Under the pieces are notes generated by a model. It did not search any database. It saw only the letters and a program-made list of their open reading frames with translations, and was not told where the DNA came from. The translations under genes and the position numbers were made by a program. DNA of 64,000 nucleotides from Macrostomum lignano (Eukaryota). Below are positions 4,401 through 36,120 of this stretch, in pieces (position 1 is the first letter of the stretch; the number at the start of each line of letters is the position of its first letter). The stretch is taken from contig NIVC01001207.1 in the NCBI GenBank assembly GCA_002269645.1, positions 23,541-87,540 of the forward strand, given 5' to 3'.

Positions 4401-4490
4401 CCCGTCTGTCTCCTCTCTATCAGCCGCCCGTCTGTCTCCTCTCTATCAGCCGCCCGTCTGTCTCCTCTCTATCAGCCGCCCGTTTATCTC
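1473..4490. repeat. About 3 kb 26-nt minisatellite (cagccgcccgtctgtctcctctctat) inside transposase intron 1, with a recurring higher-order marker
   Basis: Period 26 read directly from the sequence; the marker atctctgaatcagcacctgtctatcac recurs near 1477, 2863, 3228, 3458, 3844 and 4230. Confidence 0.97.
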
Positions 4491-4532
4491 CTCAATGTGA
4501 TTATACGAGTATATATTCTACTTGCCTACCAG

Positions 4533-5830
4533 GTCAAGCCAGCCGGACTGTCGAAGGGCTGGATTACCGGATTTCTGTTGCGCCATCCCGACATCGCTCA
4601 GCGAACGCCGCAGACGGTGAATCCTGCCCGGGCGATCGTAACGGAGGGCCGCATTCGTGATTGGTTTTCCGAGCTGGCCGACTTCGATGACGATGACCTT
4701 GTCGACGGCGCGCTGCAAGATCCGTCGCGAATTTTTAATTGTGACGAGATTGCAGTGCCGCAAGGATTGAAGTCTCACGCTGTTCTGGCAGAGAAAGGAA
4801 TGGTAAACGTGGTGCAGAAGGTCCACGGCAGTGACCGGAAGCATACCACAGTTTTAATTTGTGTTCAATGCTCAGGTTCTCTATTGCCACCCCGCTTTGT
4901 TTTTCCAGGAAAGACGCAGCCTCGAATGGATGGCTATCCCACTGATTGTCATTATTCTTTTTCACCCAACGGGTGGATGACCACCACTGGGTTTGAGGAA
5001 TTTATTAAAAAAACATTCATGCCCTATCTAGAACAAAAGCGAGTTCGCCGTCCTGTTGTCCTTTTCACAGATTTACACGGCTCCAGATTTTCGCTGGAGG
5101 TTCTGGAGTATCTGAGGCAGCAGAAGGTTGTGCTCTACGGGCTGGTGCCGAACGCAACGCACGTCATGCAGCCTCTGGACCTCGCTGTGTTTCGTCCCGT
5201 CAAGATGGGATGGCGCGAGCTTCTCGCCGACAGGTCCCGGAGTGCTGCGATTGGAGACTGTCACCAGGCTGCGATTCGTGGAAATGCTCCGCGAGGTCCT
5301 GGCAGAGCGGGCTACTCCGCAGAACATCATGGCTGGCTTCCGAAAAAGTGGCATTTTTCCGCGGAACCCTGATGCTCTAGCGTATGACAAGCTCTGCAAG
5401 CGGCAAGACCCGGCTCCTAAGCAGCAAGCAGCAGGTGAGAAGGATTGTGAATGCGTGCTAAAAGCAAGCAACACCGCCCCCACCTCTAGCCTCCCACAGA
5501 AAAAATTTAAATCAAAAAAGTGCCAAACAGCCTCAGGCTCTGTGGAGCGCTGCTTCGAGGATGTTCTTGGCACCGCTAAGCTTCACGACTTGCAAACGAA
5601 GCCAGCAACGACCGACAATGATCGCGTACTGCAGCAGCTGCTGCTGCGCCTGACCGGACAGGTGAACTGCCAACAGATCAGTGACGAGCACGTGAGCTCC
5701 GACCAGCAGAGCACTGACAGCGAGGACCAGATCGAGAGCAGCCCACTGCATCATCCCTCTCTCGATGAGGATACCGTCGAGGCGGTTGAACCACAGAGTG
5801 AGGATTTGCTCGATGCAGAGAGACAGTCTG
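4533..5830 (+). pseudogene. Transposase exon 2: DDE_1 catalytic domain with a +1 frameshift near 5240-5260
   Basis: RIFNCDE, TTVLICVQCSGSLLPPRFVF, SPNGWMT, LFTDLHGS and HVMQPLDLAVFRPVK in ORF 4497-5372. The expected continuation NIMAGFRKSGIFPRNP is in the next frame (ORF 5128-5838). Confidence 0.85.
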
Positions 5831-5959
5831 GTGAGTAGTCGGTAAATTTTGAAAAGTAAACTCAAATTAACGTATAGTATACAAGTAAATTTCACGTAAA
5901 GACGTAAAAGATGTGACACTGTAAATTACATTGTACACTACTTTAAGACCATCTTCCTA

Positions 5960-6400
5960 ATTTTCTCTCCTCTCCTCTCTCCTCTCTCCTCTCTCCCCCT
6001 CCTTCTCTCCTCTGCTCTCCCTTCTCCCCTCCTCTCCCTTCTCCTCTCTCATCTTCCTTCTCCCCTCTCCTCTCCCTTCTCCCCTCCTCTCCCTTCTCCC
6101 CTCCTCTCCCTTCTCCCCTCCTCTCCCTTCTCCCCTCCTCTCCCTTCTCCCCTCCTCTCCCTTCTCCCCTCTCCTCTCCCTTCTCCCCTCCTCTCCCTTC
6201 TCCCCTCCTCTCCCTTCTCCTCTCTCCTCTTCCTTCTCCCCTCCTCTTCCTTCTCCCCTCCTCTCCCTTCTCCCCTCTTCGCTCCCTTCTCCCCTTCTCT
6301 CCATTCTCCCATCCTCTCCCTTCTCCCCTCTCCTCTCATCTTCCTTATTTCCCCCTCTTCTCTCTCCCTTCTTTCTTTCTCATCTCCTGTCTATGTTACA
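5960..6400. repeat. Polypyrimidine (ctcccttctcccctcct-like) low-complexity repeat in transposase intron 2
   Basis: C/T-only tandem motif; the minus-strand ORFs here are repeat artefacts. Confidence 0.9.
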
Positions 6401-6520: not shown

Positions 6521-7629
6521 GTGCCTTTTGCTCGGTGACGTCAGTATCACCCGCAGCTCGAGAAACAGCCGAGTCGATGGCGTTCCCGATAAAGCGGAAC
6601 CGGACTCCAGTTTCCGGCAAGAAAAGAAGAACGTCCGTTTACCAGGACATTCCGCATCCTAACTTAACTAGCCGCTCTACTTTAGCCTTTTTCAGACTAA
6701 GACAGCAAAAGCGTCAGGCTGCTCTGGACGCCAAGGCCGCACGGCAGACCGCTCGGAGGCTTCGGGCACAGCAGCGTCAGCGTCAAGGTTCCCGGCGACT
6801 GCAGTCGAAGCAGACGGTCGCAGCTGAGCAACCGGTCGCCCAATCTGCCGTGCTGGATATGTCCGTCGCTTTAGGTCGGCTTGAGAGCAAGGCGAAGTCG
6901 TTGAATTGCTCCTTAGGTAAGGCAGATTCTTTTGGAAATTGTTTTTTTGACTCCGTCCGGCAGGTGCTGAGTTCCGAAGGCATCAATTCCGACGCCGACA
7001 GACTTCGATCAGACAGCTGCGCTTTCCTAGAGCAAAACTCCTATGTAAATGGTGAGAGTATCGTTGACTTTTTGGAAATGCCACTTAATGACTATTTACA
7101 AAAAATGAAACGTTCAAGTACCTATGCTGATCATCTTATTATCGTTGCATTAGCCAATTTCTTAGACAGGCCTTTTCAGATTTACCAGCTTGACCGTCCG
7201 GAGCCGGTAGTCATCATGCCAGAGGATCGCCACCCAGAAGGGCAATCAATCAAGCTGGCGCACATCCCAGAGCTGCACTATCTGCCGATGCTGCCGCTAC
7301 CTCTGCCGGAGCTAAGCGTTGACTGCTGGGTGCTGGTTGCCGTGCAGGCAACTTGCAGAGGACGAAAAGCTTGGCAGCATTACCCGTGTCGAGTCATTCA
7401 ACTCCAGGGCGATGGCCAAGTCGTTGTCTCTGCCTGCACTCAGTCGGTGACAAACTGGATGGCTGGAGGTCAAAAGCCATTCATATTCCCGGCCAAGAGT
7501 GACGAGTTCAGCGCATTGGTGAGTGAGGTCGCAGTTTTACCCAATCCCCATTTTCCTACGGGAAGGAATCCTGGATTCCTCTGGACCCGTGATCAGCTCA
7601 TGAATGCTCGCAGCCGCCTTATTCACTGA
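6521..7629 (+). CDS. OTU-like cysteine protease domain plus C-terminal SH3/Tudor-like beta domain; probable last exon of the transposase gene
   Basis: ADSFGNCFFDSV (Cys codon 6940-6942), STYADHLIIVALANFLDRPFQIY and ELHYLPM (His codon 7276-7278). Acceptor tttcgttcag| at 6520 is phase-compatible with the donor at 5831. Confidence 0.75.
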
Positions 7630-9225: not shown

Positions 9226-12200
9226 CATTAATTTTCCTTGTCTTGATACATGGCGCTATATATGTCTATAAATCTTACGAGCGTAATATTGGTGACTTTT
9301 GACTTGGTGACTCAGCAACAAGCATTTCCAACGCACATTAATTTAAATTTGGGTCAAAAGCCTATTATCAACAATGGGAAAACATACGAGCTAGATACAG
9401 TAGGTTTTAATAAGCCTTTAAATTTTTTATGGAACTGTAATACTTTTACTTGTAATCCCAATAGAAACATTATGCGTTCTTATACAAAACCATTGGATTT
9501 ATTTTATGTGCCTGACTAATGTCAGAATTTTTTATAATTAAAGATGAACTCAAACTGATAGTGCGGAAGATATGCTTGCTGCTGCGGCAGGGAAGGGCCT
9601 CCTTCTCGGTTAAAAAAGCCCCTGCCGACGAAGCCAAGGAAGAAAGGTGACAGTTAAAAAGAAATTAAAAATGCAACTGTCACTTTTTGAGTCACGACGA
9701 GAAGGAATTGAGCAATATCCTGGAAGCTATCAATGTCAAAAGGCCTAGCTTCTATCCAATTAAGAATGACAATACATGTAGTTACGTTTTTGTAGTGCCT
9801 TATAGGCTTAATCATTGGCCAGCGAATTTAGTCATTTCAAATATTCTGAAGCATAAAAACAAACTCAATAAAGTTTGAGTGCATTCGAGTCTATATCTTT
9901 AATATCTTTCGGCATATTAATTACTGTGGAATATTTAAGGATGAGCTATTCTTGCTGAGTTATAATTATGTATTACATATATGTATGTAGCATTTGCTTT
10001 TTGTATTTCTATTTCGCGTATACATGTACGAGCCTATATCTCTAGTTGGCCTCTGCGAGTTTGGCGCCTATAGTCTGTGTACAGTATCGCAAATATGTAA
10101 GTCAGGTCAGTATTATAGCCTGGCTGCCAGGAGTCGGGGGCAAGAGGGAGCTGCGCCCCCACCCCCCAGGCTGGTAAAAGTATGTAGCGCCCCATTGCCA
10201 GTGGGCTTGGCTCCCCCCCCCCCTCTTGCCACCAAGCTTGCCCATCCGCCCAATTAGAAATTCTGGCTATGCCCTTGTATTAAGACGTTTACTCTATTAT
10301 ACTGCGCACATATCTTAAACCTATAAAAAGGGTCAGCCGATTGCCTGCCATCGATTGGGCCTATGTGGCAATTAGTTTTGCACTCTCTTCAAAGATCTTC
10401 TTGAGCCTGTATACATTAAGTTTAGACCTAGCCCCAGAGAAATGTTGGATTGTGGCCTCTTTTGCAATGTGTATGTGTACAAAATGTATGCAATACAAGT
10501 ATTCAATATGTATACTAAGCGCACAGGCGCACCCAATGAGCCTTTTTTAGGGAGGGTTTAGCGGCCCCATCTTGCTGGTTGTGTCAAGGGGCCCAGTGAT
10601 GACTCAGTGCTCAGAGTCATCAGACTCTGCAGACTCAGAACGAGATGATTGTTTTCAACAAAATTTTAAGAACTTACAGCATTTTTCTCTGCATATTGGA
10701 TTCATCTACTTGAAGTAGAAACATATGAGTATGGTGAGAAAAAAAGAAACAGAATATTTGCAGAATTTGTTTGCAGAAAAATGGACTTTTTTTTACTATT
10801 TCTTGAATTTTTCGCTTTTTCTTCTTTAATGTTTAAAAATGACCAATAATATAGCAAGAAGAGCAGTAGACGAAACTAGTGGTACCTTGATTTTTTTTAA
10901 ATCGTGGTATAATGGTGAAATACAGGCAAGTTTAGGAAGCGAAGGTCCCTTTGAAGAAATCTGAAATGAACAAAATATGAGGTCTGTTTAAAAAAAACAG
11001 GATTTTTTACCTTCGTAAATGATTGCTTAATTAAAAAAGTCTAAAATACGTAGAAAAATATAACTTTTTATCAATTTAGCATGAAAGAGTTCAAATAAAT
11101 CGCAAAAAAGTAAAAAAACACGATTTTTCTGTTCAATGGGGGGTACTATATTCAAATGCAGATAAACAATATTTTTCGGAATCTATCCATGCAAAAGTTA
11201 TACCTTTTAGAAAGAGTATGAACTAATCTTTACAATGATATATATTTCAGAAAAAACGAACAAGAAATAAAAAAGTTATTAGTGTTCAAACACAAAAACC
11301 GAACATCAGATATCCTGTTCGGTTTGAAGATACCCTAGAATCATCGTTCGGTTTTGATATAAAATCATCAATAACTTTCTTTCTACTTGTGCAATCAAGT
11401 AAAGCGAACATTCATTTGAAAGAAAAAAAATGTTTTAAACAACTTCGGGGTAGTTTCATTTCATTACATATAAAACTTTCTTTCCTATCTATGAGAGAAT
11501 GTCGAAAAATGACACTTTCATGTTCGGTTGATGAGATCTTACCCTAGTGAGTTTCTATTTCCGCGATTCTTACTGTACGTACTTTACTACTATTGTTTTA
11601 CTGTATCCTAATTCCTATCGTATTTCAAATGCAAATGCTCTGTGTTTTGGTGTTAGTTCTCCTGTGCGCCGTAGTAGTTGTAGTTGTAGGGTAGCATAGC
11701 CGTTCCAGAGTTCCAGTCGATCCAGTTTTAATTCAGTAATAGATATAGACATTATTTAGAATTTATCTTAATTACTTTGACTACATAGATTGTTCAGATA
11801 CGAATACAAATATATAAATGAAATGAATTAAGGCGCATTGCACCCACAAGCCAATAACGCAATCGTTCATTCATCTGTCATCACAACGAAAATAAGGCGA
11901 TTCTTTGAATTCTTGGACTTCAAGAAACTTATTTTACATTGGCAACCATGCCAGCAAAGAAACGCTGGATCTGCACATTTACAGCCAAGTCAAGTATATT
12001 TATTATTGCCTATTCTACCCTGCCTATTGACTACTGTCTATGCCTAATGGATCATTAAGACAATTGACAATATTTTTTGGTCAGCTATTTTCAATAATAT
12101 CAATCTGCTTATTGAAGAACTGGTATTCATTTGGACCTAATTGCTATTATAAATTAATTATCTTGCTTGACTAGTTCTCATTGAAATTTAGTCCTATCAA

Positions 12201-12337
12201 CATATTATTATTAAATGTCAACAAATAAGACCTTTGGCATTAGTATCAAAGAATTATAATATTAACTATTCAAAGACTTCTTGAGACCAATAAGGACTAT
12301 CAGTATCATCATCATCAATTGATTAATTGCTGCCAAA

Positions 12338-13290
12338 ATGCCACCAAAGAAAGTAGTGCCTACAGGCAAATTAACAAAGACAAAAAGTGCTTCAAATACT
12401 AGCAAACCAAAGACAAGGTCTACTACTAAAAACAAGGCAAATAGTCAGCAAGTGCCATTATCATCAGTTGCTACTAAACACTTGTGTCCATCTAAAAGTG
12501 CTAATAACAATGCTCAGCCAATCAAATCGGAGGTTGAAGCTCCTAAAATAGTAACTCAAACAAACCAGGAATGTGATTCAATTTCTGTTACAAATCCAGT
12601 AGACTATTCAAGGCCTAATCAATATCCAATTAACTCTTTACCAGTTGCTAGTCATCTTTTGCAACCTATTGAATCTATTCTAAGTACCAAGCTATGCAAA
12701 TTCAATTGCCGCCAATTCCAAAGCCAGTGCCATTTAATAGAAAAGAAAATTTTGCGGATTTCCTATGCCAGATTGAAAGCTACATCAGTAGGTTTTCAAA
12801 TTTAACTGAAGCAATTAAAATTCAAACTTTATCAGCATTCTTAGGATCAGCATTTAGTACTTATCGCTCGTGGCTCTCAACTATTTATGTAACGCATGGT
12901 GTGCCTGTCAACACTCCATTAGAAAATATTCCAAATGTCACTTTCTTGGAATGCACAGAATTTCTCCGAGGCCGCTATGGTGAGAAAAGCAATGTTGTTC
13001 TACGCCGTGAACTTAGAAATCTATCTAGGAAACCAACAAAGACATTTGAGCAATTTCTTACTGCTTTACAAAACCTGGCTATCCAGGCCTACCCAGATGC
13101 AATTGCTACTGAAGTTGTGCAAACCATGATCTTAGATCAGTTCATAACTGGCATCAACGACCTCAAGGTCATGGAGCATCTATCAAATCTCACCAACTTG
13201 GAGACAGCAGAACAGGCCTTGCAGATTGCACAACAAGTCCGTGAGACACAGCAACTCTTGGCAAAAGCACCAGTGAGTAGTCAGATATAA
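12338..13290 (+). mobile_element. Ty3/gypsy-type gag relic (two overlapping ORFs linked by a frameshift), no pol downstream
   Basis: A basic MPPKK N-terminus (12338-12805) overlaps 12694-13290, which has a retrotransposon gag capsid signature (FNRKENFADFLCQIE, FLRGRYG, ELRNLSRKPTKTFEQFLTALQNLAIQAYP, ILDQFITGI). Confidence 0.75.
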
Positions 13291-19763: not shown

Positions 19764-21206
19764 GGGTCTATGAAATTTGCTAGCAGGAAATCTGCTAACC
19801 GAAGTTTGCTAGCGAGAAATTTGGTTGCCGAAATCTGCTAGCCGAAATCTGCTAGCCGAAGTTTGCTAGCCGAAATGTGCTAGACGAAACCTGCTAGCCG
19901 AAATCTGCTAGCCGAAGTTTGCTAGCGAGAAATTTGGTTGCCGAAATCTGCTAGCCGAAATCTGCTAGCCGAAATCTGCTAGCCGAAATCTGCTAGCCGA
20001 AATCTGCTAGCCGAAGTTTGCTAGCCGAAATGTGCTAGCCGAAATCTGCTAGCCGAAATCTGCTAGCCGAAATCTGCTAGCCGAAATCTGCTAGCCGAAA
20101 TCTGCTAGCCGAAATCTGCTAGCCGAAATCTGCTAGCCGAAATCTGCTAGCCGAAGTTTGCTAGCCGAAATGTGCTAGCCGAAATCTGCTAGCCGAAGTT
20201 TGCTAGCCGAAATGTGCTAGACGAAATCTGCTAGCCGAAATCTGCTAGCCGAAGTTTGCTAGCAGGAATTTTGCTAGCCGAAATCTGCTAGCGATAATCT
20301 AACCAAAACCGGTGAACAGCAATTTACGAACTTGTAATTTGCTAGATTCATTTTTTCTTGTCCAATTTCGCAAGAAACTTTGCAGGACTTATCATGCTGG
20401 ACAAATAAATGTGCGTTTTTCGCTCTAATGACTCTCTTTGTCGTGCTTATTAGCAGTGATCTGCAAATTGCAATATATAATAATAATTGCAGCCTGCATT
20501 GTTGTATCGTAAATAATGCAATTAAAAATTACTAAATCAGAAATTTCTTTGTAGCTAGCACTCGCATGACAAGAATCTGAATGTAATTTATATACAAAAT
20601 GTGCTTGTTAATTCTATTCTTCTTAACACCTTTTAAAATGTGGCTACTTTGGTCAAGATAAATTACCGATTTTCTTTTTTTAAGTGTTTAGAAAAAGGCC
20701 GATCGCGGGCTAAAATAAAATTATAAGTGTGCCCAACAATGCAATCATAAAATGTAGACATTTTGGCTTTTTACATCAATTTATCTAAACGTATCTATAC
20801 GCACAACTTTCAAGTCTTAATGGCTAGTAGTGGCAGTATATGGTACGAGCTATAAGTTATATATTTACTCGTACGAATCAAAGCAGCTCAAATCGGAATC
20901 AAAACACAGCAAATAACATGCAACAGCTACGAGAGCAAGGCAGCTAGCAAAATCCTTGCTAGCAAAATTCCTGCTAGCAGATTTCGGCTAGCAAAATCCT
21001 CGCTAGCAAAATTCCTGCTAGCAAACTTCGGCTAGCAGATTTCGTCTAGCACATTTCGGCTAGCACATTTCGGCTAGCAAACTTCGGTTAGCACATTTCG
21101 GCTAGCACATTTCGGCTAGCAAACTTCGGCTAGCAGATTTCGGCTAGCATATTTCGGCTAGCAAACTTCGGCTAGCAGATTTCCTGCTAGCAGATCTCGT
21201 ACTCCC
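19764..21206. mobile_element. Non-autonomous foldback-type DNA transposon with GGG...CCC termini and arms made of gctagccgaaatct repeats; 9-bp TSD
   Basis: Left end gggtctatgaaatttgctagcagg; right end reverse-complements to gggagtacgagatctgctagcagg. Flanks gcgtgcagg (19755-19763) and gtgtgcagg (21207-21215), one mismatch. Confidence 0.85.
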
Positions 21207-22311
21207 GTGTGCAGGTTGCCACTACAAAAACTTTTATATTGTCTTCATGCATGTATGGTTCTTACATGGCGCAATTGGCCCTTTATCAATAAGATGCTGA
21301 CTGAAACTATATATAGCTTACATTTTTCGCATTGATTAGACCTTTTATTAAATTTTTATTGCTAACTGATATCAGTTTGGGTGTTGAAGAAATTTTTTTA
21401 ATTTTAATTTTTAACGATAGTACATGTACATATGCAACATATTTAGGACACTACATTACACTAGCAGCTCCGTGGGTCTATAGTGATAATTTGAACCGCC
21501 CTGTACGGGACCGTCAAGTAAGGGACAAAAATGAAACTGTCCTTGGGAGTAAATCTTGTACATTTGGCTCAATCCGCTTGTAAACAGTAAAAACGAAGTC
21601 GTCTGCTAGCGAAGTATTACTTAATTTCTTGCACATTTCTGTTTTTATTCAAAAACCTATATCTGAAACTAGCAAAGAGAAGTAAATTATCAGATTGAAT
21701 ACAAATAATTTATCGTTTTTGTTTTATCCGTTGAATGATTAATGCGCTTTCTATTCTGGGTATATTTAAAATAATACATTTGGAGGGGAAGCACTTGTTT
21801 GGCGGATGCATGATTCATTCATCCATCCATCGTCCTAGTGGCTACGGTGAGAATCCTGACTTTTGGCTTAGTCCTCTAGCGTAAGTCCATATCAGAAATA
21901 CCACCTACAACTGATTCGTAGGTGCCTAAATTTTAATTGAAAACAGTTTTTGGACTTCTTGAACTTTAGGTAGATAAAATAGTTTTAATAGGATCATAAT
22001 TTTGTCTGTATATGGGTTTTTGTCTTGATAGTGCTGATTTCAAATTTGAGCTTCATTTTTTCGTAGCTTAAAGCCAACCACCAGGGCATAGGGAATGGGG
22101 GGTTTTAGGGTGGGGATAAACTTCAATAGAGTTATAGAGGCATGGGGGTCTATTGTAGATTAGGTAGATAAATTTGGAGACTAAGAGTGTCCAGGGGAAA
22201 ATTGTAATGCAGCTTAAATAAAAATTTCAGCAAGTTATCAAACACCTCCATGGAGAAAAATTATAATCTTATTAATCTAATTGATATCAGCAGCTGTAGT
22301 TACCTTTCAAA

Positions 22312-22676
22312 GGGATGCCATCAAAATGGCCACACGTGGAATAGCCACACAACAAAATGGCCACACCGTCAAAATGGCCACACGACAAAATGGCCACACG
22401 ATGTAATAATTTGTAATAATAAGAGATAAGAGAAGTGGAAGGTTGAATGTACATTTAAGTAGAAAGCTCCTAGCTCCTAACTTTTTAACTTTTGTGGTAA
22501 ATTTTACTTTGTGATACTTTGTGAACCATTTTAGCATTTTTTAACTTTCTTACATAACTATTTTAAATCTGCAACCCTTTTTGTTTTATGTGGCCATTTT
22601 GTCATGTGGCTGTTTTGATAGTGTGGCCGTTTTGACGTGTGGCCATTCCGCGTGTGGCCATTTTGATGGGCATCCC
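22312..22676. mobile_element. MITE with GGGATGCC...GGCATCCC termini and subterminal aaaatggccacac repeats
   Basis: gggatgccatcaaaatggccacacg at the left is mirrored by cgtgtggccattttgatgggcatccc at the right; flanked by duplicated (c)tttcaaa (7-9 bp depending on end assignment). Confidence 0.85.
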
Positions 22677-24274: not shown

Positions 24275-25533
24275 TATATATAGTTTTAATTTGTTAAATT
24301 GCTATAAATATTTAATGGACAAGATGTTTTAGAATTAAATCAAAGATTCTAGTCAATCTTTACTTACAAAAATAAAAAGCAATTAACTATAATTGTTGTA
24401 TATTAATCTAAACAAATCTTTTTCTTTGTTTTTACTTTTAACTTTGTATCTATATAAATATGACCATTTAGCTATAAAATAGGAATTTCATGTTGATTAG
24501 ATACATGAACCAACTTTACCAACCGAAAACCCAATATATTGTTATGATAAACATTGTTTATTTGAAAAAATAACTATTTATGACAAATAAAAATTTGTAG
24601 CCTTGTTACAACAGTTAATTTATTTAAACTATTAAAATAAAACATGCAATTTTATCTTTATATTATTCAAAATTTAGCCTAATATTTGCTAATAGACACT
24701 TCTACTTAAAGTAGAGCTATGAAACTTTGGTTTGTCATAGATATATATAAATATATAATATTATAATAAAAGTTGAAAATCAATTTCCAGCTTAAAGCCA
24801 ATAACTATACTTTGTTGTTTGAATTAAACAAAAGTTAATAATAAGCTTGTTAAAATTTGAATATGATTGCGAATATCAATCTATAAGGTAAATATAATTA
24901 TTATACTTGTAAAATTATCTTTGTGACCTATATATAGGCTAGTGATTATATCCTGATTAAGCAAACCCTCTGGCACAACTGCTGTTTAAACACTTGTAAC
25001 ATTACATGAGCTAAAAAAAACCAATAGGCCCTAATGATAGCAGAAGCAGAACTTAAACTTGGTCCTAGAGATAATAAGTTGACATTGTTAATTGACTGAC
25101 TATTGCCAACCTTCTATGATCTGTACTTTGTAGGGCTAAGGCAGTGGTGACAGTCTCGTCTTTAGTCTTTCATTTGTCTATTTTTCATATCTTTCATAAT
25201 TGTAAACTTCTGTAAGTTTCATTTTTTATAATTCTATGTTGTACATTGTATGCACATGATAATAAGTGTAAAACAAATTTTCCCAGAAGTTTGGTTGGCA
25301 GAAAAATGTTGATTTTAAGGGAGATCATTTTTGTCTAAATTTGAAAGTTTTGAGCTTTTCTGGTTTACTGATATCAAAAGCATAGCAGTGGAAATGATAA
25401 GTATTTTTTCTGCTACTTTTTATAATCTTAAAATGATAATGTAGCAAAGTATCATGGACTTATTGTATTCATGTTGCTGTGTTTTGAACAATGTAACACA
25501 AAAACAAATCTAAACTTCTATATTTCAGCTGTT

Positions 25534-28500
25534 ATGCACTATCAACACCTGATCCTCTTCTGCATAATTGCTGCCACTCTCGCAGCCAATGAAAAGCCAA
25601 GATTCAAGTTCTCCGAGACCAACAAGATCATGCTGTCCTGGGAAGAAACATGGGAAGTTGGATCGTCAAACATGTTAGCATTTTTGAACACTGACAAACG
25701 GCTAATAATTAAAATCGTAGTCGTAGGAAATGTTGGTACTGGCTTGAGAAGAATTCTACAGTTCAAGTGCAGGCGAGATTATGTTGAGTCAATGATGGAC
25801 ATGGAATCATTGAAGTCCAGCTCAAATGAGGTCCAGTGTAAAGACACTATACCATTTTCAGTGAGGCTTAAAAACGAGCGCGAAAATGAATTCGACTTCA
25901 CGCTACTGTCGTCAAAATTACCATACTCGCATGCCTTTTCTGATAAAATCGAATTGCGAGTACGCATCGAGCATTCGTCTGGCGTTCTTGAATCCAATAG
26001 CCTATTTGTATGGAATTTAGATGCCATTGGCAAACTGAACCCGGATGGTAGGCGTTTCCTTTCTACAGGGGCTGAACAGTTTCTGAAGCGAATGTCGGAG
26101 AACATGCCGGATACAGAGTTTGATAGTACGCAATTTTTGGATCCTGCCATGAGCCAAATAATCAAGGAGGCTCCAGAATTTCTCAAACCGAAGATTAACA
26201 TCGGAGCTATTCTTAACTTTGACGCTGGCACATGCGAGTCCTATCAGATATCAAGGGCGTCGCTCTTTGTCAACTATCACTCAAAATTGGATGAAAGAAA
26301 CCAGAATCTACTTAAGCATATCTATTTGGACACGGAGACTGGTCTGTTGCACTACTCGCGATACGGTCTCAGTTCCATAATCTCTGATTTTTTTTCTTCC
26401 AAGAGTCCGGTTCAGATTGGTATTTGCGCAACTTTATCGTTCGCAGGCCAAGGCCAACCCTATGACAAAACATTCTCTATTGCGCAGAAGATACCAAAGA
26501 CTGAGCTGTCCTACAAGACACTTGGAGATCGAAACTCAAATTGCAAAATAATCGGTTCTACTAATCAAAAAGCGGTCACAATATTCTCTGGTATGGACTA
26601 CACTCCACTTGTTTGTCCCATTATATGCAACAGTCCAAACCAAGTGTACAGATTTTTTCACGGTGATAAGGGTCTTGTTCCGGATACGCGGCGCGATTGG
26701 ACAGAAGTGAATGGGATTCGAATCTCCAAGACGGGCAACATAATAGAGTTTCCGCCGATAATTTACAATAAACATTCGGGTGCCTATACGTGCGTCGCTG
26801 GTGGTACAAGGTTCACCTTTAACACGCAAGTAATTTCCATGCCGCAGTTTACGTCAAAATCGTATGGTAGCAGCTCTAGCTCAGAAATTTCTGGTAATCT
26901 GCCACCAACAGTGTATGCTATGGAAGGCGAAGGACTATCTTATAACTGCACGGCATACTTTACCAACGTTGCAACTACAAATGTCTTACCGGTCTTTTAC
27001 AGTGCTGCCTTGGGCGAAAACAATTGGAAAAAATACGATTTAGATAGTTTCAATCGTCTAATGGCTACTCCGGTGTCCAATGTTATAACTGTGCCGAAAG
27101 TTTCTCAACTTGAATCGATGACGCTAACATTCAATATTGGCAAAGTTCCGCCAGCAAATCCGTCAACTGGATTGAATTTCACGCATCGTTGCGTGTGTGA
27201 CGTAACTGTTGGCACAGCTGACACCCAAAAGATTGGTATGCCATCTTACAGCGTGCAGAGTGGCAGCAGTGTTTTCTTTTTGAGCCGTCCTCTACTAAAC
27301 AGCTTCGACATAAGCATGGCAAAGAACTGTAGCTTGCAGTCGTGCACCGCCTCAGATGGGGCGTATTTCCAATTTTCACTGAAGCCTCAACTTGCCGCCT
27401 ATTTGAAAGCGATTGGCGTTTCCGTGACAGGTTACTTCAAGATTGATGATGATTACTTGGACTTTGTCAAGGTGCTTAATCAGCCGGATGTGGCAAAAGT
27501 ATCCTACGATCCGGATACAACAAAGCTTTCCTTTAAAGTTAATCGCATAACAAAGCCTGAAGTGTTAACCGAGCTTCAGTCGCGCAAGACGCTGACACCA
27601 ATATTCAACTTTCGCTACAAAGAGGGCACAAAATCGCCCAATCTAGTTTTTGACAAGAAGCGCTACGGCCCGCGCCAACTTGTTGCTGGTAAGCGCGACT
27701 GTCGATCGGACGATCTCTGCTTCTACTCTACCGACTTTGACGCTGACACCACTCTTCAAGGCCTCATGCTTGGCCTGGACTTCAAGGGTCAGCCTGTTGT
27801 TGGCGAAAATGCGGCGACTGCCAGCACTAGCATCATTGTGGGAATCATATTGGCTATTGTTTTACTGCTAATTATTGCCGTACTCATCGTCTTCCTTCTT
27901 CGACGCGACACCGGTCAGACCTATTTGCTAGACGAGAAGGAACGCCAGCAGGGCAATCATCCTGAGCAGGAAGCCAAGGAGGAGCAGTTCAAAGAGTATC
28001 AGCGACCCGAGGAGGGCCCGCTGAAGGCCAGGCAGATGTCAGTGGGCTCGAGTATCTCTGCTGGTAGCAAAGATGACCAAGAGCTTGAGGAATATGGCAA
28101 CGACGATATAGACTGCAGTAAGTACTGTTCAGTGTGTACGATACATAGCATGACTTAATTGGCATAATCTTCATGGCAAAGCAAACCTAATATGGTCAAG
28201 CTCCATCCCAAAAAAGGCTAATTTCTAGAATCGTAAAACTAACTGCGATCAAAATGAATGAGCTCCCGCTGTTATGACTGGCCGAGTGCTCCATTTGCCA
28301 TGTAAAGAATTTAAGCCTAAAGAAATTGTCGAGACGAAGAGTATTTAGCCCGCCTTTATCTCTTATCTCTTATCAGTCTCACAGCGCCTGTTAATAAATT
28401 TTATAGACTAATTCTGCCCTGTCTTTCCGCCCATATGCGCAACTATTGTGTAAATGGGGCCAAGCACAAAGCTCAACATTGCGAACTCAGGTTAAAATTA

Positions 28501-29118
28501 TTCAAGTGCTGGATTATAAACAAATCTGGGGTCATGAGAGGGCATTTTGGGATAAAAAAGTTCAAATAAATCAAGTGTGAACTTCTTGATGCTCTGAATT
28601 GTAAATTTAATCCTCTGAATCTAAAAGAGACCCTCTCTGTGCGCATCCTGGCGCACTTTAAGCGACATTGTCACACAATCAGCGAGAGGCATTACTTACT
28701 TCCCATTCCGCCGACTCCCCTGAGCAGGCACACACACAGGAGTGTACAGCGGCCCTAACTTTATTTATCGTTAGGCATGTACACTTTAATTAACGTGTCT
28801 TGGGGGTTGGCCCTCAAGGGCGTTGATTGCACGAGCAGAGCCAAGCCGAGATTCCAGTTTAGTTACAAAGTTAATGTGACTGCCTGGCCCGCTGACACAT
28901 AAGACCGAGTTGCTAAAGGTGGCAAAGTCTTGAGATTCAAGGAAGAGACAAATCCTTGAGAGAGTGTGAAAGCTTTAGCATCCGATGGAAATACTAGGAT
29001 TTCAAAACTTTGCAATTCCTTGTCTTTTACAGCAAAGTTCGTGGAGGACGGCTCATTCATCGGCGATTATTCTACGGACGCGCGTAGACGCGACGCCTTC
29101 AACGCTCATCAAGTGTGA
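25534..29118 (+). CDS. Type I membrane protein with Ig-like domain(s) and a neuroglian/L1CAM-type cytoplasmic tail (FIGDY); exons 25534-28117 and 29033-29118
   Basis: Signal peptide MHYQHLILFCIIAATLA; Ig-like GAYTC; TM IIVGIILAIVLLLIIAVLIVFLL; tail RRDTGQTYLLDEKE...FKEY. The phase-1 splice gca|gtaagt ... ttttacag|ca gives TKFVEDGSFIGDYSTDARRRDAFNAHQV*. Confidence 0.9.
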
Positions 29119-29565
29119 AAGGCGAGAACGAGAGTGGCGATAGACAGCCAGGTGGATAACTGTTCAGTCAGCTGAGGGTAGTGTTAAGCTTATCTATAGC
29201 TTATTGGATTGCCAGCCTAGTGTAATGATTTGCTAGCGTGTCATATTTTATAATATTTAGCAGTGTTTTTCTCTGTGTGTTGTCTGGCTTTGTGCCTCTG
29301 TAGGTTTTTCGTTCAGTTTAAAATATTTATACTTGTTATGCGGCTATACACTATGGTATCAACCTTTCCTTTGCTTTTTATAGCGTTTTCGCATAACGTT
29401 AGTTGTCTGTATGCATATCACAGTACTTTGTCCGTTTGAACAAATTTACAAAAAATCTGAGAGATTACATGTATTAGAATATGTTTCTATGTCCTGTGTG
29501 CAATCTCATCGCTGCCTCAGCTACCGTAGTAGCAAACTCCGTCTATTGAACAGTAATATCTAAAC

Positions 29566-30178
29566 CAGGGGTCGGCAACCTCCGGCCCGCGGGCCAGATC
29601 CGGCCCGCAAAGACTTTCTATGCGGCCCGCGAACTTCCTTAATCTTAATTATTACAATCCGGCCCGCACCTTTATTGTAACTTCATTGTTTCTCCTACAA
29701 AAGTTTTGTGCACTAATAATGGGAAATTTCTTTCCTCAATTGCCAACTTTAATAACAAATTAGTTAACAATGAGACCCAAACTGATCGTGTAAGTGGCTG
29801 TTTACTAACTCTAGACAGACAGCACATCAGTTCAAACTTTCGAATATGGTATGGGGGGGGGGGTAAAGGCCCAGGGGGGCAGATTTTGGAGGGTAAAGAC
29901 CCAGAGGGCGGATTCTGGAAGGTAAAGACCGACGGGGCGGATTCTGGAGGGTAAAGACCCATGGGGCGGATTCTGGAGGGTAAAGACCCATGGGGCGGAT
30001 TCTGGAGGGTAAAGACCCATGGGGCAGATTTTGGAGGTAAAGACCCAGAGGGCAGATTTTTTAGGGTAAAGAAAGACCCAGGGGGGGGGGCGAAGTAATC
30101 GGGGGACGACCTGTGGCCCGTGGTCTTGAACTGAAAACCTCATCTGGCCCTCAAGTGGAAAAAGGTTGCCGACCCCTG
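29566..30178. mobile_element. Non-autonomous hAT (Charlie-like) element with an internal 29-nt tandem repeat
   Basis: TIR caggggtcggcaacct / aggttgccgacccctg; perfect 8-bp TSD atctaaac (29558-29565, 30179-30186); repeat gattctggagggtaaagacccatggggcg at about 29870-30070. Confidence 0.95.
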
Positions 30179-32426
30179 ATCTAAACTAAAAAGACAGATG
30201 AAGACTTAGGTTAGCGGTTCTGTTGCTCTCAATGACTGAGCTGTAGCTCATTTCTAACTGTATTTGCATTTCGTCTTAGTTTAGCAATATAGTCATATAT
30301 ATATAGATATAGATATTTGTTAGCACAAGTCAGCTTCCATATATATCTGCATAATGCATTTTCGGAAGCGGGTTTGACCATTTTTTCTCTTTCTCTCTCT
30401 AGTTCTGCCCACGCCCAGTGCGTGCGTGCGGGCCGGTCTGAGGTTTAGAGAGGAAGGTTAAAAGGCCGGTCAAGGAAGGCGGGAGGGAGGGCGGTCGATA
30501 TGCGCTCTGTTCTGCCTTCAGATAGCTTATTATAGTTTAGTGTGGGCCTAAGCTAAATAATCACCCCCGAGCTGTGTGGTCTGATACTACTAAGCCTGAT
30601 GCAAATGATATCAACGGTGGCAGTGAGGCTACTCGAAATAACCCCGATCAAATATTAAATATTCAATCTTCATACTAATCAGAACCGCCGCGATTAGCCG
30701 GGCTGTTGCAATTTTATTTGGGCGTTTATTTTTTTAAAGAGGTGTGTTTTTTTCAAGTTCTAATCTCCACGGTAGCAATACAATGTGTTTAGAATTCTTT
30801 TTTTCTGCTTCAAGCAGCAATCAATTTTTGCTTTTTTTCCTCCCATTTAGTCAAAAGCAGCATATCAGTGTCTGTTACAGTTTTTTTCTTCATTTATCCG
30901 ATATATTAGTCCTGAATAGCTAACCTAATGAGTTTAATGTAAAAGCACAGCTGTCAATATTTTTGTTAGTAACATTGCGTAAGTTTTGAATTACAGTAAC
31001 GTATTTTTAATTTAGTCAGCTGTGTGGCTGCTATTTGCAGAAAGTTTACTGCTTTACTCATTGCTTTTTCTGCTTCTTTTGTTTTAAAAGCAACATTTAA
31101 TTGTGTAATAATCAACTTTTTGTCATTTTTTTTACTTTAAAATACCGCCTTTAGTCAAGCTTAGTTAGTTTAAGCTGGAATTTGTTCAACATTTTAGTTT
31201 CTAAGAATTCTATATATGGCATACTAACCCCTGTCGGCATTCCTCTGCCTGTTATATTTAGCCAGCCGAATTGGTCTTTTGCTATTTTTTTAACCTATGG
31301 GAAAGCGTACCTTGCCAGCGGATGGAGGTGTAGCACGTATCTAGGCGGCAAGAGAGGCAATAACAAGTTCCATTTGCATTGGTCCCATAGGAGCTGGGAG
31401 AGATTTCGCAGCCGTATTCCCATATAACTAACTATAACTATAACTATCTATAACTATGTGCCCTGCGTACAACTTGTCTGAATTGATGGCCTGTTGACTG
31501 CATAGATTGCGGGTCCTACATACTGCATGTGCAGATATTACAGAATAAGGCCTGGCTTGCCTGTGGCCATTAGGGGTCAGATCAAGATCGTTATCTTGTT
31601 CCTAGCATTCTTGTTATAATGCGTAATCATAAGGTCGGCTGGTTGTGCAAGCTTTAGTTTGGGCCCTAGTCAGCTCAAGGAGCTTTGAATACAGAAACTG
31701 GCTAGGAGAAATTTCCTTCACCCGACTCTTACCCCGTGTGCAGTGCAGTGTTTTATTTGAATTTTTGTCCTAATATTATTATTAATTTCGTAAAATAATT
31801 GCCATTCAGCGGTGCAGTTACATGTCTCTAAACTTTTTTGTCAGCTTTGCACCTCTTTGTGCTGTAAATTCTGACTGCTTTCCTTGCTTCATTAGCTCAC
31901 AATATTTCTATGCTTTTTATAATAACTGCTCTAATACCTGCCTACCCGATCGCCATGTTCCTAATAATTAATCCCGCGTGTTTTTTTACCGATTTTTGTT
32001 ACGCAAAATTCTCAAATCTGTCACTCGTGCGTCCTCGAAAAAAAATGTTTTCTCTCGTCGTGTTTATAACTGATTTTTTCGCCGCTTTGCAAAATTATAA
32101 TATCGATTTGCGAACAAAAATAAATACGCGTTCATTCATTTTGAGCCTTTTGCAATGCGAAAATTTGAAGTCGAAGAATTCTTAAAACTGAATTTTATTT
32201 GGGAGAACTTCTCTAGTGTTTTAATTTAGATTTTATTAAACTTCATAAAGCCTGAAAGGTTTATTGGCACCACTGCCCCCTCCCCACTTTTTGCTGTGGT
32301 AGGGCCGATCCCCCACTTTTGGTAGGAAAATCCAATATGTCTACGGTACTGGAAACTCTAATGTTTGTCTTAGACTTATTAAAAGTTTAGAATCCTTTCA
32401 CAATGCTCCCTTTGCCATTTTGATGC

Positions 32427-35229
32427 ATGATGGCTTGGAGACAGACTTTCAGCCGGCTATGCGTGCTGCTGGCGGCCATACTAGCAGTTAGTGTTGCGCA
32501 GAAGTCGCCACAGTTTGTGTACTCACAGTCTAACAAAATTATGCTGTCCTGGGACGACGTCTGGGAAGTTGGCGTATCCAACAAGTTGGCCTTTCTTAAC
32601 AAAGATAAGCGGCTTATTATCAGGATTAACGTTGGCGGCGATACTGGCAACAGCTCTGGCACCAAGGTTCTAGTTTACAGGTGTACTGAGTCGAGTCCTC
32701 CGGAGGAAGTCGCTCTTAGTAGCGTTCAGTCGCAGAGTAATTATTGTCCGGGCACTATGCCCTTCACCATTAGTAAAGTGAGCGGAAAGGAAGGCATTGA
32801 CTTCTATTTTACACTTTTGGATTCGATGCAAACTTACGATAACGTGTTTTCTCAAAAGATTCAACTGTACATCCGGGTTGAATTTCCTGTCGGCACAATC
32901 ACATCCAACAGTCTGTTTGTTTACAACCTGGACGCTATTAGCAAATCGCCCAGTTCATCGTCTAACGACGCCATTATTGACAGCTTTTATAAGCGCTTTC
33001 TAACTGTGCCGGCCATCAATTTCATGATCCAGATGAACACTACCGCCGATCCATTCTCTTATGTGCCCTTTATCGACCAGCAGATTGTCGATCGGATTCG
33101 TTCAGCTCCGGATTTTATCAAGGCAAAGATAAACATTGGGGCAATTTTGCAATTCGATGCCGGCGACTGTCAGAATTTCCAGTCGCATTTGGTCTCTATG
33201 TTTGTTAACTACTACTCAAAGATGAATGAGAATAATATTAATTTGTTAAAACATATTGGACTAAGCTTGGATGACGGCAGGTTGTACTATTCGAAATATG
33301 GACTAACAACCGCCATATCAAACTTCTTCAGAGACCGAGGATCGCCCAAAGAAATCGGTATTTGCACTCTAGTTTCTTTTGCTGGTCATAGCCAGCCGTA
33401 TTTCAAGGTTGATGAGGTTAAGCAGAGAATATCTACTACTATTGTGAATTATAAGCAAATGGGTTCAAGAACCACTGAATGTTCGATTGTTGGCTCGGGC
33501 ACGGCTCGATCAGTGAGCATATTTGCTGGCATGGACTACACCCCGTTAGTGTGTCCAATTATTTGTGACGATCCTAACCAGGTGTTTAGATTTTACCATG
33601 GCAACCAACAAATTGTGTCCAACGGTCAAAGCGAATGGACTTATGTTCAGGGACTGAAAATTTCTCGAACAGGAAATGTAATCGAATTTCCAGCTGAGCT
33701 TTTCGAGAACGACTCCGGTGAATACAGGTGCGAGGCTGGCGGGAAGAGCTTCAAGTTTGACGTTAAAATTGTCTCCATGCCCCAGTTTTTAACAAGATTG
33801 CACGATAGCGACAGCAAAATTGTTTCGGGAGACTTGCCTCAAGTAGTATTTGCAATTGAAAACGAGACTCTCTCTTATAACTGCACAGTGTACTACACTA
33901 ATATGGACCAAGTCGACGTGATTCCAGCCTTTCACACCATTGGCACCGCTGATCAGAAGTGGAAAAAGCTCGATCTGGACCAATTTAATCAGATGTTTTC
34001 CTCTTCTGTTTCCACCGTTCGCCAGTCAACTCTTAAAACAAACGAAACCAAAACACTAAACCTGACAATCTCCCGGGTGCCTGTCTCCGATTATTCAACT
34101 TATCTGAACTTCACTCATCGATTTGTGTGCGATGCATCTGTCAGCCCTGCCGATGCCCAGAAGGTTGGCCTACCATCATACAACATCCAGAGCAGCAGCA
34201 ATGTCATCTTTCTTAAGCGACCCACGATTTTAAGTTTCAATCGAACGTCTGCTAAGCCTTGTTCTGAGCAGAAATGCTCCAACAAAGTTGGCGGTACTTT
34301 TGAAGTCTCTTTGAGCCCCGACATGACTCGTCGGTTGGCGGCAAGCGGTGTCAAAGTGTTTGCCTATTTTAAGATTGACAACGAGCTGCTTGAAAACATT
34401 CATACCATCCATGGACAGGATATTTCTGTATCAAAGTTCTATCCCGAGACGAACCGTTTGTTGTTTAAAATATTGCCTAACGCTAAAAAAGAAGTCATCT
34501 CGATTCTACAAAAGTACAAATATTTAACGCCAGTATTTAATTTTGGGTACAAAGACTCCTCCGGTACGAAGCTTACTAATCTAAACTTGCACAAAGAGCG
34601 CTACGGCCAGCCTATTGTGTCATTTGGTGACCGAGACTGCCGAGCCGATTCTACCTGCTTTTACTCCACCGACTTTGACTCGGCTGATTTGCTCGCCGAT
34701 TTAAGCATCAGACTGGGTTTCGATTGGATCAGCGACGAGCAGCCGGCTGCTGGGCTAGCCAGCGCCAGTGCCGGCCTCATTGCTGGCATCACCCTGGCCG
34801 CTCTCATTGTTCTAATTGCAATCATACTCCTGGTGCTGCTTCTGAGACGCGACTCGGGCCAGACTTACTTGGTCGACGAGAAGGAGCGCCAGCAGGGCAA
34901 CCATCCCGAGTTGGAGGTCAAGGAGGAGCACTTCAAGGAGTACCAGCCGGCGGAGGAGGCGCCAATGCGGGCTGAAAGAATGTCGCTGAATTCCTACTCG
35001 GGTGTGTCAATCAAGAGTCAAGACGATCGAGAATTGGACGTCTACAAAGACGACATGGGCGATAGTGAGTGCTCATTTGTCTGTTTGTATCTATAAATTG
35101 TGCAATAATTCCATTATATAATAAACTTAAATCATTTTATACTCTTTAGTGGGCGATTTCACCGAGGACGGCTCGTTCATTGGTGAATACTCGGCCAAGA
35201 AAAAGAAGCAAGACAACTCGGCAAACTAA
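32427..35229 (+). CDS. Tandem paralog: type I membrane protein with Ig-like domain(s) and a neuroglian/L1CAM-type tail (FIGEY); exons 32427-35064 and 35150-35229
   Basis: Signal peptide; collinear with the upstream paralog (NKIMLSW, GMDYTPLVCPIIC, CFYSTDFD); SGEYRC Ig motif; TM; a phase-1 85-nt intron gives MGDFTEDGSFIGEYSAKKKKQDNSAN*. Confidence 0.9.
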
Positions 35230-35384
35230 TTGAATCGAGTGTTTGTAGTTTTGTTCAAAACATTGCACAGTGACCAGGCTAGTGTGAGGCGCTTGTAACT
35301 TCTAGTTTTAGTTTTTATATTTTCATTGTTCATTGCGCTAGAGTCCGAAGTCTGTACTCATTGAAGGTCATTGAAGGTCAGTCC

Positions 35385-36120
35385 CTACGCCATCCTTGAT
35401 CCATCAGAAGGGTGCCACCACCTACCCATCCTTGATCCATTAGAGTGGTGTCACTCACTACCCCATCCTTGATCCATCAGAGGTGTGTCACCCCCTATCC
35501 CATCCTTGATCCATCAGAGGGGTGTCACCCCCTACCCCATCCTTGATCCATCAGAGGGGTGTCACCCCCTACCCCACCCTTGATCCATCACAGGGGTGTC
35601 ACCCCCTATCCCATCCTTGATCCATCACAGGGGTGTCACCCCCTATCCCATCCTTGATCCATCACAGGGGTGTCACCCCCTATCCCATCCTTGATCCATC
35701 ACAGGGGTGTCACCCCCTATCCCATCCTTGATCCATCACAGGGGTGTCACCCCCTATCCCATCCTTGATCCATCACAGGGGTGTCACCCCCTATCCCATC
35801 CTTGATCCATCACAGGGGTGTCACCCCCTATCCCATCCTTGATCCATCACAGGGGTGTCACCCCCTATCCCATCCTTGATCCATCACAGGGGTGTCACCC
35901 CCTATCCCATCCTTGATCCATCACAGGGGTGTCACCCCCTATCCCATCCTTGATCCATCACAGGGGTGTCACCCCCTACGCCATCATTGATCGATCACAG
36001 GGGTGTCACCCCCTACCCCATCCTTGACCCATCAGTGAGATGCCACCCCCATCCTTGATCCATCGGTGAGATGCCACCCCATCCTTGACCCATCAGTGAG
36101 ATGCCACCCCCTGCCCCATC
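35385..36120. repeat. 37-nt minisatellite (ccatccttgatccatcacaggggtgtcaccccctatc)
   Basis: Period 37 measured at 35641/35678; homogeneous core with decayed ends. Confidence 0.95.

Follow-up and report, generated by a model that had tools for sequence, protein, structure and literature searches.

The FIGQY-type cytoplasmic tail, which ties axonal and epithelial membranes to ankyrin and spectrin, is considered the hallmark of a single, ancient family of bilaterian adhesion molecules. The L1-type immunoglobulin cell adhesion molecules (IgCAMs) L1CAM, neurofascin, NrCAM and CHL1, Drosophila neuroglian and C. elegans LAD-1/SAX-7 all feature this tail, downstream of an ectodomain containing six immunoglobulin (Ig) and three to five fibronectin type III (FN3) domains. 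Here, we describe two neighbouring genes, g1 (25534-29118) and g2 (32427-35229), which are located on the + strand of a 64,000-nt stretch (hereafter, the window) of the 336-kb contig NIVC01001207.1 of the flatworm Macrostomum lignano. Each gene consists of a 2.6-kb exon and a small last exon, and a third copy was not found elsewhere in the window. g1 and g2 are probably functional tandem paralogs encoding type-I receptors, in which an ectodomain made of five modules is joined through a stalk to an L1/neuroglian-type tail that would couple recognition to ankyrin.

L1-type tails and gene structure of g1 and g2

The tails, about 100 residues long in both proteins, carry every motif of the full L1-type cytoplasmic series that the original prediction had attributed to the two genes. 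These are the juxtamembrane motif (RRDTGQTYLLDEKE in g1, RRDSGQTYLVDEKE in g2), FKEY in both proteins, an acidic stretch (DDQELE in g1, DDRELD in g2) and, in the last exon, FVEDGSFIGDY (g1) or FTEDGSFIGEY (g2). A comparison with the Pfam model Bravo_FIGEY (PF13882), suggested in the original prediction, gave an end-to-end match with both spliced tails, covering positions 1-84 of 86 in g1 (66.5 bits, E 5e-18) and 1-86 of 86 in g2 (62.5 bits, E 9e-17), with a cut-off of 23.8 bits; the unspliced exon-1 products already exceed this cut-off. By its sequence, the g1/g2 tail is a genuine cytoplasmic domain of the L1 family, present in full length. The tail had no match among PDB sequences. Chance or low-complexity resemblance was rejected because the Pfam match spans the full length of the model.

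In the crystal structure of neurofascin bound to AnkG, the contacting neurofascin residues are F1202, E1204, D1205, F1208, I1209 and Y1212 (PMC9396398). All six (F-x-E-D-x-x-F-I-x-x-Y) are present in g1 and g2 and, relative to FIGQY, Q alone is changed, to D or E. Four paralog groups keep the FIGxY motif, and among them the eleven-residue contact segment is nearly invariant, with a D to Q change in one group, while its flanks vary, which argues for selection on exactly the residues that contact ankyrin. From these conserved residues we infer, on good grounds, that the g1 and g2 tails bind ankyrin.

As the original prediction had it, the signal peptide, the ectodomain, the transmembrane segment and most of the tail are encoded in one 2.6-kb exon. 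Exon 1 of g1 (Mlig020049; 25534..28117, + strand), delimited by an open reading frame (ORF; 25471..28158, likely start ATG 25534), a GTAAGT donor and the match to PAA70765.1, encodes an ectodomain of about 766 residues, the transmembrane segment (27832-27900) and the first portion of the tail (27901-28117). The following phase-1 intron (28118..29032; 915 nt) has GT..AG boundaries (donor GACTGCA/GTAAGT after base 28117, acceptor ttttacag/CAAAG at 29033) and is 99.2% identical to copies on two other contigs. The last exon (29033..29118, stop at 29118) encodes (T)KFVEDGSFIGDYSTDARRRDAFNAHQV, which includes the ankyrin-binding-type motif and completes the Bravo_FIGEY match. In g2, also on the + strand, exon 1 (Mlig011430; 32427..35064; ORF 32427..35096; donor GTGAGT) is 100% identical to PAA70766.1, the annotated start of which is the second ATG at 32430; it includes the transmembrane segment (34776-34844) and the first tail portion (34845-35064). 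An 85-nt phase-1 intron (35065..35149; donor GGCGATA/GTGAGT after base 35064, acceptor ctctttag/TGGGC at 35150) separates it from the last exon (35150..35229, stop at 35229), which encodes (M)GDFTEDGSFIGEYSAKKKKQDNSAN and again completes the Bravo_FIGEY match.

The spliced products, 889 (g1) and 905 (g2) residues long, can be aligned end to end with 46% identity (E = 0), and their likeness is therefore not due to chance. Each contains an N-terminal signal-like segment and a single strong hydrophobic segment (residues 771-789 in g1, 788-806 in g2). Spliced g1 is 100% identical over 889 residues to PAA70765.1 (BOX15_Mlig020049g1), which maps to the same contig as g2, and spliced g2 is 100% identical, from the second methionine, to PAA70766.1 (BOX15_Mlig011430g1). 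GenBank labels both entries ‘hypothetical protein’, and UniProt names both after the tail domain. The gene models of the M. lignano annotation were built from RNA-seq transcripts (PMC5730564), and the splicing and expression of g1 and g2 are thus supported. The transcript-derived g1 model starts with ‘VM’, 3 nt upstream of the ATG and directly after a tttcag acceptor, a start that would fit spliced-leader trans-splicing.

Two other contigs also carry the g1-g2 pair, about 99% identical; duplicated copies are expected, as the M. lignano genome is polyploid. The dN/dS check suggested in the original prediction was carried out on these nearly identical copies instead of on g1 versus g2, in which synonymous sites are saturated at 46% protein identity. 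Values among the three genomic copies range from 0.11 to 0.37, and two independent comparisons, when pooled, gave 17 nonsynonymous and 18 synonymous substitutions against an expected ratio of 3.5:1 (binomial 1.6e-4). Introns differ by about 0.8% between copies, a value similar to dS. On these small counts, g1 and g2 are under purifying selection. The possibility that they are pseudogenes or gene-model artefacts was rejected, given the intact ORFs, the transcript-derived models and dN/dS values below 1. In the g2 copy on NIVC01000364 (L006, 16248-19045), exon 1 aligns to that of the window with gaps at two positions; its annotation starts only at residue 200 (706 residues), and the copy may carry a frameshift.

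Predicted modular organization of the ectodomain

The original prediction had described an ectodomain lacking the 6 Ig + 5 FN3 array, with N-terminal and membrane-proximal regions resembling nothing recognisable. At the sequence level both statements are borne out. Ig-type motifs are found in two places (SGAYTC in g1 and SGEYRC in g2; LSYNCT...HRCVCD in g1 and LSYNCT...HRFVCD in g2). Bravo_FIGEY is the only Pfam model matching g1 and g2 above threshold, accompanied by a sub-threshold Ig_3 match; weak Ig_2 and Ig_3 matches occur in 5 of 20 family members, and fn3 matches none of the 20 at E up to 1. No SEA match was obtained in the members scanned with Pfam, and the NCBIfam scan gave no match, as expected for a eukaryote. 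All seven transmembrane groups of the family share fourteen invariant cysteines.

Module limits were taken, for g2, from the DSSP assignment of an AlphaFold2 model. The model was obtained from 20 family sequences, with a predicted local distance difference test (pLDDT) score of 83.8 and a predicted TM-score (pTM) of 0.77; an alignment of the two paralogs gave a pLDDT of 37.5. Downstream of the signal peptide (residues 1-24), the predicted modules are the all-beta D1, a beta-sandwich (residues 25-168; 32499-32930); the mixed alpha/beta D2, with five helices and seven strands (169-345; 32931-33461; pLDDT mostly 80-94); the Ig domain D3 (346-455; 33462-33791); the Ig-like D4, with a C486-C568 pair, seen in the model (456-598; 33792-34220); and D5, with a beta-alpha-beta-beta-beta-alpha-beta order (599-722; 34221-34592). 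A stalk containing C738 and C744 follows (723-783). All features are on the + strand. The helix-containing modules D2 and D5 are modelled with pLDDT values of about 80-94 (86-92 in the membrane-proximal D5), and the high pTM implies that the modules pack together instead of following one another like beads on a string.

D3 is a genuine Ig domain, which places g1 and g2 in the immunoglobulin superfamily. In addition to the strand pattern of the model, its profile (residues 346-455) matches FCRL5 (5.6e-12), contactin-5 (6e-5) and then contactin-4, contactin-2 and DSCAM among PDB sequences, and cysteines C376/C380...C435 occur with the DSGEYRC motif. Profiles of D1, D2, D4 and D5 found no match in PDB sequences (best E 0.26-0.61), and hhalign comparisons of the five modules with each other revealed neither internal repeats nor detectable similarity. 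In place of the six N-terminal Ig domains of L1, we thus found one Ig domain by sequence (D3), one Ig-like module by model (D4), one module with no Ig signal (D1) and one with an alpha/beta fold (D2). In place of the three to five membrane-proximal FN3 repeats, we found the alpha/beta module D5, in keeping with the lack of fn3 matches. A UniProt entry (A0A1I8GV.., P0001, 1558 residues) fuses g1, with an internal deletion removing D3 and neighbouring sequence, to g2; this fusion is an annotation error that could mislead counts of Bravo_FIGEY domain architectures.

When the whole model was compared with PDB by Foldseek, the best match was contactin-2 Ig1-6-FN1-2 (E 3e-14, TM-score 0.30, 10% identity); the DCC Ig1-4 horseshoe gave TM-scores of 0.52-0.54 normalised to the target. 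Because pIgR, titin, the cadherin-like domains of RET and protocadherins score nearly as well as contactin-2, the match is to Ig-like/beta-sandwich arrays in general. Searches of BFVD gave the same picture, and no full-length structural analogue of the ectodomain was found with the whole model in either PDB or BFVD. Structure prediction and Foldseek, the check put forward in the original prediction, therefore did not yield an ordinary L1 array, and the nearest matches are generic Ig, FN3 and cadherin arrays. Similarly, the new extracellular module that had been proposed is upheld insofar as it differs from the L1 array; it is not wholly new, as the model features three beta-sandwich modules, one of which is Ig by sequence.

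These results bear directly on the strongest alternative, namely, that g1 and g2 are derived L1CAMs, fast-evolving flatworm orthologues of neuroglian/L1 in which the ectodomain was shortened and remodelled from an Ig/FN3 array. We regard this as unlikely, though it deserves serious consideration. The tail is unmistakably of the L1 type, the best Foldseek matches are the contactin-2 and DCC arrays, contactins are among the nearest PDB sequence relatives of D3, and a cestode Bravo_FIGEY protein of like size and layout, described below, hints that flatworm L1-tail proteins may generally be about 900 residues long. Moreover, given the three beta-sandwich modules and the IgCAM-array matches, remodelling from an L1-like ancestor keeps some plausibility. 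Yet the helix-rich alpha/beta modules D2 and D5, predicted with confidence, are unlike either Ig or FN3, and no FN3 signal was obtained in any of the 20 members. The absence of similarity between modules, the lack of PDB sequence matches for four of them and the presence of five modules versus eleven also speak against orthology, as does the fact that cadherins, RET, pIgR and titin score nearly as well as contactin.

Family members, distribution and the FIGxY exon

An exhaustive HMMER search over 1.84 billion representative proteins returned 16 matches, ten of which are M. lignano clusters; the other six, including giant Ig-repeat proteins, share the Ig motif alone. A paralog count, also suggested in the original prediction, gave at least seven M. 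lignano groups featuring a transmembrane segment and an L1-like juxtamembrane tail, together with four shorter groups. Four of the seven transmembrane groups (g1, g2, P0003 and P0004) keep FIGxY. In the shorter, tail-less groups (P0008-P0011), D4 is the last module and is followed by a terminal hydrophobic segment resembling a GPI (glycosylphosphatidylinositol) signal, so that these proteins may be GPI-anchored.

Tandem arrangements recur elsewhere, with three members in L004 and two in L005. Tandem duplication expanded the family, and polyploidy also contributed to its diversification. The L004 members (3306-6006, 10001-12619 and 19970-22600) lie on one strand and correspond to a P0007/P0033-type gene, to P0027 and to a third copy; a FIGxY exon was not found within the locus for any of the three. 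P0027 consists of one exon, which ends in ...SKDDLELS, exactly at the position of the g1/g2 splice donor. In L003, an inverted second copy of P0022 (14930-17190, minus strand) is 96-99% identical to the first. With its frame interrupted near residue 327 and its end at residue 755, this copy probably represents either a recent pseudogene or an artefact of the assembly.

Two sequences provide leads beyond M. lignano. In the ENA metagenome contig L001 (ERZ25070786, ctg142120l), an exon at 5038-5595 encodes a stalk, a transmembrane segment and a tail 49-51% identical to those of g1 and g2 and ends at a GTGAGT donor located at the same codon; the ectodomain exons lie off the contig, and no FIGxY exon was found within 10 kb downstream. 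The L001 stalk lacks cysteines (IIFYSSEEDP replaces CFYSTDFD), the exon sits among reverse-transcriptase fragments and the source is a eukaryote. A ‘Bravo_FIGEY domain-containing protein’ of the cestode Schistocephalus (A0A183SHS7; 915 residues, signal peptide 1-19, transmembrane segment 769-792) has a layout like that of g1 and g2. The family had been predicted to be lineage-specific. It is indeed a multigene family for which HMMER returned only M. lignano members, and, in view of the cestode protein, ‘lineage-specific’ may mean flatworms rather than Macrostomum. Word-index protein searches with g2, an 11-sequence ectodomain profile and the tail profile, for which the index is insensitive, returned self matches and the one metagenome fragment. 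A scan of JGI metagenomes with the patterns [LTM]CFYSTDF and T[PA][LI]VCPI[IVL]C gave 313 pattern matches, none of which was confirmed. Literature and supplement searches by gene ID, Bravo_FIGEY and flatworm neuroglian yielded no study of the family. The family is uncharacterised and found so far almost only in M. lignano.

Three observations weigh against the reading of g1 and g2 as functional, ankyrin-coupled receptors with a distinct ectodomain. The dN/dS values are based on just 7-19 substitutions per comparison. The best structural matches of the model, compared as a whole, are IgCAM arrays, and the ectodomain may therefore be less novel than its sequence suggests. Finally, FIGxY is missing from three of the seven transmembrane groups (P0005, P0006 and P0007), which indicates that ankyrin coupling is not essential to the whole family.

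The last point leads to an alternative that we consider improbable, according to which the tail was retained but repurposed, with the juxtamembrane Y-x-x-[DE]EKE/FKEY region serving ezrin-radixin-moesin (ERM)-type linkers or kinases and the FIGxY exon persisting as a dispensable relic. All seven transmembrane groups keep YxxEEKE...FKEY, and 7 kb of sequence downstream of one of the three groups devoid of FIGxY contains no such exon. A relic is difficult to reconcile with the near-invariance of the contact segment, amid variable flanks, in the four groups that keep the exon. A receptor linked to ankyrin stays the reading that we prefer, and this role is plausible for the family.

g1, g2, P0003 and P0022 all keep the phase-1 intron that precedes the FIGxY exon. 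P0003 features two additional introns, one within D5 and one just before the transmembrane segment, and the nearly intronless organization of g1 and g2 is thus best explained by the loss of introns from an old family undergoing tandem expansion. The retroposition or exon capture envisaged in the original prediction, in which a spliced mRNA was retroposed and an L1 tail exon captured later, could account for the 2.6 kb of intronless coding sequence in g1, g2 and P0022, in a genome averaging about five introns per gene (PMC5730564), but is highly improbable, as the FIGxY intron is shared, the metagenome fragment has a donor at the corresponding position, intron loss explains the intron-poor state more simply given the two further introns of P0003, the ectodomain exon also encodes most of the L1-type tail, the copies are tandem and not dispersed, and no intron-rich parent is known.

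Other features of the window include repeats and mobile elements. The spacer between g1 and g2 (29119..32426) contains a 29-bp G-rich tandem repeat (7.3 copies, 29861-30072); in the copy on NIVC01001983 the spacer is about 600 nt shorter, and the length of this region therefore varies between genomic copies. A 37-bp tandem repeat (17.6 copies, 94% match, 35383-36034) begins about 150 nt past the g2 stop, probably in or just beyond the 3' untranslated region, and is followed by a related array of 30-31-bp units (36015-36111). Transposon-type ORFs at 4497-5372, 6535-7629 and 60515-61651, with domains of the DDE_1 endonuclease (E 3e-14), OTU-like cysteine protease (E 4e-8) and RNase H (E 6e-12) types, are probably remnants of mobile elements flanking the receptor genes. 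A 466-residue ORF (1470-2870) encoding a low-complexity, extensin-like, proline-rich product probably represents a repeat and not a gene; the region 2001-4000 has 61% GC and extreme skews between strands, with a GC skew of -0.49 and an AT skew of -0.56.

Comparison with L1-type adhesion molecules and contactins

We infer an adhesion or recognition function, ankyrin binding and control by phosphorylation for g1 and g2, which would work as follows. The two proteins would be type-I membrane glycoproteins of an M. lignano multigene family, and their ectodomains would mediate cell-cell or cell-matrix recognition. The FxEDGSFIGxY segment would dock in the inner groove of the ankyrin repeats and tie the receptor to the spectrin skeleton, and phosphorylation of the motif tyrosine would release it from ankyrin, as in L1CAMs. 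Some members of the family would have lost the FIGxY exon, and the shorter ones end in the GPI-signal-like segment. A complete, selected L1 tail on a different five-module ectodomain would mean that this tail can serve as a portable cytoskeleton-coupling cassette. The family also offers a natural experiment, as it comprises paralogs that have the motif, that lack it and that lack the tail altogether. M. lignano is the flatworm with working transgenesis and RNA interference, and the proposed function is therefore directly testable. In practical terms the impact is modest. GenBank and UniProt already list the proteins as uncharacterised entries, and the family may not extend beyond a single lineage.

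g1 and g2 share with L1-type IgCAMs the type-I topology and the full Bravo_FIGEY tail, including the basic-G-x-x-Y-x-x-[DE]KE motif, F-x-EY, the acidic stretch and FxEDGSFIGxY, as well as at least one I-set or C2-like Ig domain (D3). In contrast, the ectodomain measures about 760 residues and consists of five modules, whereas the ectodomain of L1-type IgCAMs, at about 1100 residues, comprises six Ig and three to five FN3 domains. The flatworm proteins also feature two helix-containing alpha/beta modules and a cysteine stalk, lack any fn3 signal and show no sequence similarity to L1-type IgCAMs beyond the tail and D3. As read from the sequence, the YRSLE-type AP-2 motif that follows FKEY in L1-type IgCAMs is also absent.

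D5 resembles in position, just before the stalk and the transmembrane segment, the SEA and ferredoxin-like domains of mucins, dystroglycan and protocadherin-15. Such ‘membrane-adjacent’ domains also resemble D5 in the order of strands and helices. Assignment of D5 to either class is a lead suggested by the order of secondary structure elements in the model.

As for contactins, CNTN2 is the best structural match of the whole model, at a TM-score of just 0.30 and 10% identity, and contactin-5, -4 and -2 are matched by the D3 profile. Contactins are GPI-anchored, whereas g1 and g2 span the membrane and carry a cytoplasmic tail. The coexistence of transmembrane and GPI-like forms in the M. lignano family parallels the split between L1 (transmembrane) and contactin (GPI-anchored). 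Tentatively, g1 and g2 might represent the first described case of an L1/neuroglian ankyrin-binding tail on an ectodomain not descended from the 6 Ig + FN3 array, a product of flatworm-specific domain shuffling that later gave rise to ankyrin-coupled transmembrane, FIGxY-less transmembrane and GPI-like forms, and in which the division between L1 and contactin would have been re-created independently.

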